This document shows positions 559 to 62,376 of a stretch of 64,000 bases of DNA, piece after piece. The position numbers and the translations under genes are program-made. How positions within the stretch are numbered: the first letter of the stretch is position 1; each line of letters begins with the position of its first letter. The stretch spans positions 161,758,001 to 161,822,000 of the forward strand of contig NC_042997.1 in NCBI RefSeq assembly GCF_006345805.1. Reading direction: 5' to 3'. This stretch comes from Octopus sinensis. Its lineage: Eukaryota. The notes beneath the pieces are model-generated. The model worked only from the letters and a program-made list of their open reading frames with translations. It did not search any database and had not been told where the DNA came from.

Positions 559-588
559 CAAATGTGGATTCAACTTCAGATGGTTTTT
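559..588 (-). CDS. micro-exon A* (E)KPSEVESTF
   Basis: CAG|30 nt|GTGAGT, phase 1-1. Confidence 0.85.

Positions 589-62376: not shown

Follow-up and report, generated by a model that had tools for sequence, protein, structure and literature searches.

The 64,000-nt stretch of DNA analyzed here (the window) probably belongs to a single animal gene on the minus strand, of which it holds at least 62 kb, and in which at least 57 tandemly duplicated 30-nt coding micro-exons, grown in tiers, would encode a spring- or spacer-like product. Between 559 and 62376, the minus strand contains 57 intact exons, each a 30-nt block flanked by an AG acceptor and a GT donor. These limits agree exactly with the extent given in the initial annotation, 62376 being the end of the first exon in gene order and 559 the start of the last. 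The exons, their defective copies, and the recently amplified block are as follows, in gene order, with the class (I or II) and type (A to F) where assigned.

62347-62376 (-), 30-nt exon, class II, type F, CAGAAG tandem acceptor (62376-62382)
62029-62058 (-), 30-nt exon, class I
61510-61539 (-), 30-nt exon, class II
60816-60845 (-), 30-nt exon, class I
60488-60517 (-), 30-nt exon, class II
60157-60186 (-), 30-nt exon, class I
59036-59065 (-), 30-nt exon, class II, donor GTATGC
57362-57391 (-), 30-nt exon, class I
56629-56657 (-), 29-nt type D copy, splice signals intact, one G deleted, in-exon TGA if included
55795-55824 (-), 30-nt exon, class I, type C
55449-55478 (-), 30-nt exon, class II, type B
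55116-55145 (-), 30-nt exon, class I, type A
53992-54021 (-), 30-nt exon, class II, type F
52055-52084 (-), 30-nt exon, class I, type E
51320-51349 (-), 30-nt exon, class II
50489-50518 (-), 30-nt exon, class I
50142-50171 (-), 30-nt exon, class II, type B
49809-49838 (-), 30-nt exon, class I, type A
48659-48688 (-), 30-nt exon, class II, type F
46947-46976 (-), 30-nt exon, class I, type C
46600-46629 (-), 30-nt exon, class II, type B
46268-46297 (-), 30-nt exon, class I, type A
45147-45176 (-), 30-nt exon, class II, type F
42894-42923 (-), 30-nt exon, class I, type E
42159-42188 (-), 30-nt exon, class II, type D
41328-41357 (-), 30-nt exon, class I, type C
40981-41010 (-), 30-nt exon, class II, type B
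40648-40677 (-), 30-nt exon, class I, type A
39529-39557 (-), 29-nt type F copy, splice signals intact, A-run short by one A, in-exon TAA if included
37208-37237 (-), 30-nt exon, class I, type E
36476-36505 (-), 30-nt exon, class II, type D
35647-35676 (-), 30-nt exon, class I, type C
35300-35329 (-), 30-nt exon, class II, type B
34968-34997 (-), 30-nt exon, class I, type A
30256-30285 (-), 30-nt exon, class II, type F
28589-28618 (-), 30-nt exon, class I, type E
27841-27870 (-), 30-nt exon, class II, type D
27428-27457 (-), 30-nt exon, class I
26877-26906 (-), 30-nt exon, class II
26509-26538 (-), 30-nt exon, class I
24904-24933 (-), type E-like 30-nt copy, donor GT changed to CT (dead exon), within a 5.1-kb intron
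21349-21378 (-), 30-nt exon, class II
20640-20669 (-), 30-nt exon, class II
19613-19642 (-), 30-nt exon, class I
18177-18206 (-), 30-nt exon, intact between AG and GT
14612-14641 (-), 30-nt exon, unique CA start, junction GCA (Ala)
13495-13524 (-), 30-nt exon, class I
13149-13178 (-), 30-nt exon, class II
12849-12878 (-), 30-nt exon, class I, type A
10565-10594 (-), 30-nt exon, class II, type F, donor GTAATG
10041-10070 (-), 30-nt exon, class I
9470-9499 (-), 30-nt exon, class II
9028-9057 (-), 30-nt exon, class I
8290-8319 (-), 30-nt exon, class II
7903-7932 (-), 30-nt exon, class I
4894-4923 (-), 30-nt exon, class II, type F, CAGAAG tandem acceptor (4923-4929)
4565-4594 (-), 30-nt exon, class I
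2623-2652 (-), 30-nt exon, class II
1482-1511 (-), 30-nt exon, class II
559-588 (-), 30-nt exon, class I
34968-60186 (-), block of recently amplified super-repeat units, unique parts 96-100% identical

The inventory comes from a scan of both strands for a YAG acceptor with pyrimidine tract and a GTRAG donor, tallied by exon length. On the minus strand, 46 candidates had a length of 30 nt, a number far above that expected by chance, with nine for the next commonest length and a mean of about one per length. On the plus strand, no exon length had more than four candidates; with consensus splice signals absent there and no length enriched, a plus-strand gene was ruled out. Adding weaker donors (GTATGC, GTAATG) and a family profile search completed the inventory to 57 intact exons with 34 distinct sequences; as the 57 are paralogues, counts over them are not independent observations. 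The profile search recovered the same copies plus three defective ones, on the minus strand only, and in combination with a scan for the class II acceptor motif it revealed no further family exons apart from one possible relic. The latter is a possibly decayed class I exon ending in GATTTAAATCCACAGTATG followed by gtagaa, at ~17500-17540 (-), between the exons at 18177 and 14612. The array occupies the whole window, and no recognizable exon was found in 62377-64000 or 1-558. Introns range from 270 to 5130 nt (median, 705 nt), many of them being short at 270-320 nt, and the exons make up 2.8% of the span.

The boundaries of these exons are uniform. All 57 end in G, and their first two bases are AA in 44, AG in six, AT in six, and CA only in the exon at 14612-14641; the exon at 559-588, for example, reads AAAAACCATCTGAAGTTGAATCCACATTTG on the minus strand, preceded by cag and followed by gtgagt. 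The sole frame free of stops across all 57 is phase 1-1, in which each exon opens with the last two bases of a codon, while the alternative frames contain stops in 22 and 25 of the exons. Because every intact exon is phase 1-1 with a final G, any subset of exons joins in frame and the junction residue depends solely on the downstream exon. All 57 x 57 ordered joins accordingly give GAA, GAG, GAT, or GCA, and none gives a stop. These are the properties that the initial annotation had described, and its further statement that skipping can produce neither a frameshift nor a stop is formally true of the 57 intact exons, although the two 29-nt copies at 56629-56657 and 39529-39557 would break the reading frame if included. 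These two copies may be assembly errors; if they are real, the combination of a stop with intact splice signals would mean obligatory skipping or loss of the transcript.

It is clear, as far as DNA can show, that these blocks are real coding exons. Among divergent paralogues of families A-F, the exons are 83-93% identical, compared with 42-60% in the 150-nt flanks, and intron conservation is confined to the core splice signals. In the phase 1-1 frame, the minimum numbers of substitutions at codon positions 1, 2, and 3 are 14, 13, and 38 (chi-square p ~1e-4), and there are 34 synonymous codon variants compared with 27 amino acid variants. A noncoding satellite or transposon-derived repeat with splice-like edges arising by chance, or a dead pseudogene array, might be proposed from the absence of both annotation and homologue and from the defects in some copies, but either is highly improbable given how much better the blocks are conserved than their flanks, the three-base periodicity of the substitutions, the single frame that is open in all 57 exons when stops interrupt the alternatives in 22 and 25, and the confinement of consensus acceptors with pyrimidine tracts and of GTRAGT donors to a single strand. 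On this evidence, a noncoding repeat is effectively excluded as an explanation.

The exons fall into two classes with distinct splice contexts. The 30 class I exons combine a poly-T tract with TTCAG or CTAG as the acceptor and GTGAGT or GTAAGT as the donor. The 27 class II exons encode the peptide pattern IVTExxxRx, have GTAAGC, GTATGC, or GTGAGC as the donor, and carry on the acceptor side a conserved yTAAy motif near -28 with the acceptor context GTTAATTYCACAG; their GTAAGC and GTATGC donors are consistently farther from the consensus. The two classes alternate in 49 of the 56 adjacencies and share E1, S/T4, E5, and E7 of the decapeptide, from which we infer that both derive from a single ancestral decapeptide exon. 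At a higher level, six exon types in the order F-E-D-C-B-A form a super-repeat of ~5.3 kb. Five to six recent units lie between 34 and 62 kb, with unique parts that are 96-100% identical and lengths (A exon to A exon) of 5680, 5620, 3541, 5307, and 5041 nt, while older copies at 4.5-30 kb are 72-85% identical in alignable DNA. The 3541-nt unit (46268-49808) lacks exons E and D, which fits unequal crossing-over within the array.

Several smaller features accompany this organization. Long (AT)n microsatellites at 37339-38114, 43024-43727, 47049-47241, 52390-52540, and 57492-57622 sit at an equivalent intron position in each super-repeat, and their length differences account for much of the variation in unit size. 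A second, rarer module of three exons is present twice, at 21349-19613 and 2623-559 (-), with the copies ~18.7 kb apart, which points to a level of repetition higher than that of the six-exon super-repeat. In the two type F exons with a CAGAAG acceptor, use of the downstream AG would drop 3 nt and change the junction Glu-Val to Val.

The paralogue pattern is consistent with growth of the array in tiers. An ancestral phase 1-1 exon would have been duplicated and its copies would have diverged into classes I and II; the class I/II pair would then have tripled to give the six-exon super-repeat, which would have been amplified several times, most recently as the nearly identical ~5.3-kb units. Each copy would inherit the Glu codon split after its G (G/AA), and purifying selection on both the Glu and the G at donor position -1 would maintain all exons as mutually compatible cassettes. 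Two mechanisms could in principle tune length, namely the skipping of exons and, in the DNA itself, unequal crossing-over among near-identical super-repeats, and only the crossing-over route has left direct traces in the sequence, in the form of the 3.5-kb unit missing two exons and the units of varying length.

Uniform boundaries follow from this history, since the duplication of an exon to give a paralogue copies its boundaries as well. The last exon base is donor position -1, for which the consensus is G, a point that the initial annotation had also made in attributing part of the terminal G to the donor consensus. With the first codon base fixed as G, the junction is limited to V, A, D, E, or G and can never be a stop. 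Changes in the first two bases are synonymous (AA to AG), conservative of acidity (AA to AT, Glu to Asp), or, once, Glu to Ala (AA to CA), and they look like the expected residue of mild purifying selection on an acidic position. The junction Glu, which is E1 among the three conserved Glu residues of the decapeptide, is kept in 30 of the 34 distinct exons, compared with 28 of 34 for the internal Glu5. Boundary compatibility is thus, as judged from the exon sequences, a by-product of repeated exon duplication for which a separate code is unnecessary. The proposal of an any-to-any modular code therefore stands with respect to compatibility and falls with respect to special design, since common descent of the duplicated exons supplies the boundaries, and the boundary "code" in itself teaches no new lesson. 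The suggestion that the locus represents a new kind of isoform generator is likewise not shown by the sequence, and same-phase cassette arrays have already been documented elsewhere.

When joined, the 57 exons give a predicted product of 570 residues, which is a lower bound, as the array comprises at least 57 exons. Each exon contributes one decapeptide with the consensus E-x-x-(S/T)-E-x-E-(S/T)-(T/R)-(V/I), and the composition is dominated by E (25%), T (16%), V (12.5%), S (9.5%), I (9.5%), R (6.5%), P (5%), and K (4%), with A at 2.5% and G at 0.5% (3 of 570 residues); Thr and Ser together make up 26% and Val and Ile 22%. With a predicted pI of 4.23, a GRAVY of -0.79, a net charge of -0.17 per residue, and a normalized hydropathy of 0.412, below the Uversky charge-hydropathy boundary of 0.474 and hence on the disordered side, the product is probably an acidic, low-hydropathy, disordered repeat. 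Alternatively, the IVTEKVTRT segments are beta-prone and the Val and Ile content is high, so the product may be an ordered, beta-rich repeat. No homologue of the spliced conceptual protein was found among 5.8 billion proteins with a single-sequence search and a profile of the 60-residue unit. Searches of Pfam returned only noise, with no match to the PPAK motif (PF02818) even at E <= 10, and no relative of the predicted product was found in the PDB. Ten ORFs from the window were absent from the protein collection, the exon patterns were not found in metagenome and viral contigs, and no Ig, Fn3, signal-peptide, or other domain exon was seen alongside the array within the window.

In both composition and gene layout, the predicted product would resemble the PEVK-type springs or spacers of giant modular proteins. 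[quoted passage not shown] PEVK exons of TTN encode PPAK modules of about 28 residues, whereas the exons of the array are uniformly 30 nt, or 10 residues, with low Pro and Lys and high Thr and Ser. Symmetric exons make up 85% of those in TTN and 97% of those in NEB (PMC9222585), and the TTN PEVK exons have been described as having "highly compatible" donor and acceptor sites, variable inclusion, and a triplicated block at exons 173-199 (PMC11514934). A cross-species titin survey called PEVK domains with a 40% cut-off for P+E+V+K (PMC12063666); in the array, this content is 47% overall and 44-48% in all 250-residue windows, above the 40% per window used for titin-type PEVK and below the 52-58% of Drosophila PEVK regions (PMC2185597). 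The link to titin-type springs is therefore an analogy of composition and gene architecture and does not place the product in that family. It is possible, if on the whole somewhat doubtful, that the protein is of a different kind and not a muscle-type spring, such as an acidic extracellular, matrix, or adhesive repeat or a cytoskeleton-associated spacer. Neither homology to titin-family proteins nor a PPAK motif is detectable, and Pro at only 5%, Lys at 4%, and Thr plus Ser at 26% are unlike classical PEVK; the P+E+V+K content above the operational cut-off, and the single repeat per exon combined with recent super-repeats that mirror the triplicated TTN exons, point the other way, although neither is decisive.

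The spring- or spacer-like segment that we favor can be set beside several other systems. Insect projectin (bent) has in its PEVK/NTCS-1 region exons down to 24 nt or 11 residues, which are spliced in a wide range of combinations (PMC3835035); Drosophila and Tribolium have 11 such alternative exons and honeybee up to 21 (PMC3835035). The array likewise presents a run of very short exons encoding a PEVK-type segment, but in projectin these exons are less numerous, differ among themselves, and encode no uniform decapeptide, and no homology to the array was detected. PPAK matches and detectable homology, present in none of the exons described here, also separate the array from titin and sallimus. 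Drosophila sallimus was considered as the closest model and rejected on gene layout, as its PEVK regions sit in large exons. In tropoelastin, all splice sites are phase 1:1 and cassette-like exon removal keeps the frame, as is the case in the array, and two exon types alternate in both. However, tropoelastin exons vary in size and encode hydrophobic domains rich in Gly, Val, Pro, and Ala in alternation with Lys-Ala cross-linking domains, whereas the array exons are of fixed size and their product contains 25% Glu, 0.5% Gly, 2.5% Ala, and 4% Lys; elastin is, moreover, restricted to vertebrates. Fibrillar collagen arrays, with exons of 54 or 45 bp, encode Gly-X-Y repeats, which the three Gly residues in 570 do not allow.

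Micro-exon genes of schistosomes contain exons of 6-81 bp, mostly in multiples of three, separated by long introns (bioRxiv 10.1101/2023.06.21.545858), and they are difficult to annotate and generate protein variation through exon usage (bioRxiv 10.1101/2023.06.21.545858). The array shares their very short internal exons in multiples of three, all being 30 nt, but the schistosome genes have 10-20 nonrepetitive micro-exons encoding a small secreted protein, in contrast to at least 57 paralogous exons and at least 570 residues here. Symmetric exons that encode disorder and occur in runs in the human genome typically come from internal tandem duplication and tend to be alternatively spliced (PMC3632108), a rule that predicts an array of this kind, of which the present one is an extreme in uniformity and exon number. 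Dscam-type clusters differ in that paralogous exons are alternatives for one segment, of which exactly one is chosen through docking/selector RNA pairing. The way in which the ten-residue exons jointly form a repeat, together with the alternation of classes, would argue for additive and not exclusive use. No match to an array of 30-nt exons, or to a named "micro-exon array," was found in the literature. The novelty is one of degree: uniform 30-nt exons, at least 57 of them in series, two alternating classes with distinct splice contexts, and no detectable relative.

If the micro-exon array is expressed, a central issue is how its length would vary. That the boundaries are maintained for a combinatorial isoform generator, in which single 30-nt exons are skipped in 10-residue steps, seems rather unlikely to us. 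The in-frame, stop-free joins giving E, D, or A across the 57 x 57 combinations would suit such a device, as would the heavy alternative splicing of known analogues (projectin PEVK and TTN PEVK), the systematically greater distance of class II donors from the consensus, and the two 29-nt copies with in-exon stops, which would need skipping if they are real. However, common descent alone yields the same boundaries, the junction Glu is not better conserved than Glu5 (30 versus 28 of 34), and no extended regulatory elements are visible, the flanks being only 42-60% identical. With introns conserved at the core splice signals only, there is no positive sign of regulated skipping, and the preserved alternation of classes (49 of 56) suggests a 20-residue pair, and not the single exon, as the working unit, in which case any skipping would proceed in 60-nt steps.

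Constitutive inclusion, with length varying by unequal crossing-over and gene conversion among super-repeats so that alleles differ in copy number, is a possibility that we entertain tentatively. Units that are 96-100% identical and yet range in length from 3541 to 5680 nt, one of them without exons E and D, are what such exchange would leave behind, and the strong polypyrimidine tracts, the GTRAGT donors, and the many introns of 270-320 nt, a size that would permit very short exons to be spliced by intron definition, fit routine inclusion; the 29-nt copies, on the other hand, would truncate the transcript unless they are assembly errors, and comparable arrays elsewhere are alternatively spliced. 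Were inclusion constitutive, splicing compatibility would be practically irrelevant. It is unlikely, in our estimation, that the array forms the spring or spacer of a large protein lacking a detectable homologue in which exons are used combinatorially, either singly or as class I and II pairs, to give a ladder of isoforms in 10- or 20-residue steps that differs between tissues. If that were true, this would be the longest uniform micro-exon array described, as well as a natural example of a repeat protein whose length is set both by exon skipping and by changes in copy number.

The tandem micro-exon array also has implications for genome annotation. Exons of 30 nt or less are difficult to map and frequently escape annotation (bioRxiv 10.1101/2023.06.21.545858), and a single 150-nt read would span up to five exons of the array, many of them inside near-identical repeats. 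Given both the very short exons and the near-identical super-repeats, the array is likely to be invisible to standard annotation pipelines, and the lack of a matching protein among the 5.8 billion searched may reflect such omissions; alternatively, the source proteome may be absent from the searched collection. If the array is expressed, the gene model of a probably large protein lacks a long, acidic, repetitive segment, and the locus would provide a clean model both for the building of elastic or spacer regions by duplication of same-phase exons and for the recognition of very short exons in series.

Outside of the exons, the window is an intron-dominated stretch of animal genome. Scans for ORFs, tRNAs, and Rfam families found no long ORF, tRNA, or Rfam match in it. 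It is AT-rich, with ~30% G+C, and tandem repeats with a period of up to 6 make up 7.8%. The intron between the exons at 18177 and 14612 harbors, in antisense orientation, a decayed mariner-type DNA transposon at 14719-16223 (+), with 35-nt terminal inverted repeats that are 83% complementary; stops interrupt its transposase frame. Its best full-length protein relatives are 47-48% identical (cichlid SETMAR-like protein), and contigs of the ENA assembly ERZ22157276 match it with 65-69% partial identity and 67-68% DNA identity. A single weak hit to Octopus bimaculoides, at 42% identity, was uninformative. The large intron between the exons at 26509 and 21378 contains a local duplication of ~594 nt (22772-23349 and 23817-24400) with 95.5% identity, and a purine-rich (AGA)n/(GAG)n tract of ~130 nt lies at 3766-3899 (+), in the intron between the exons at 4565 and 2652.
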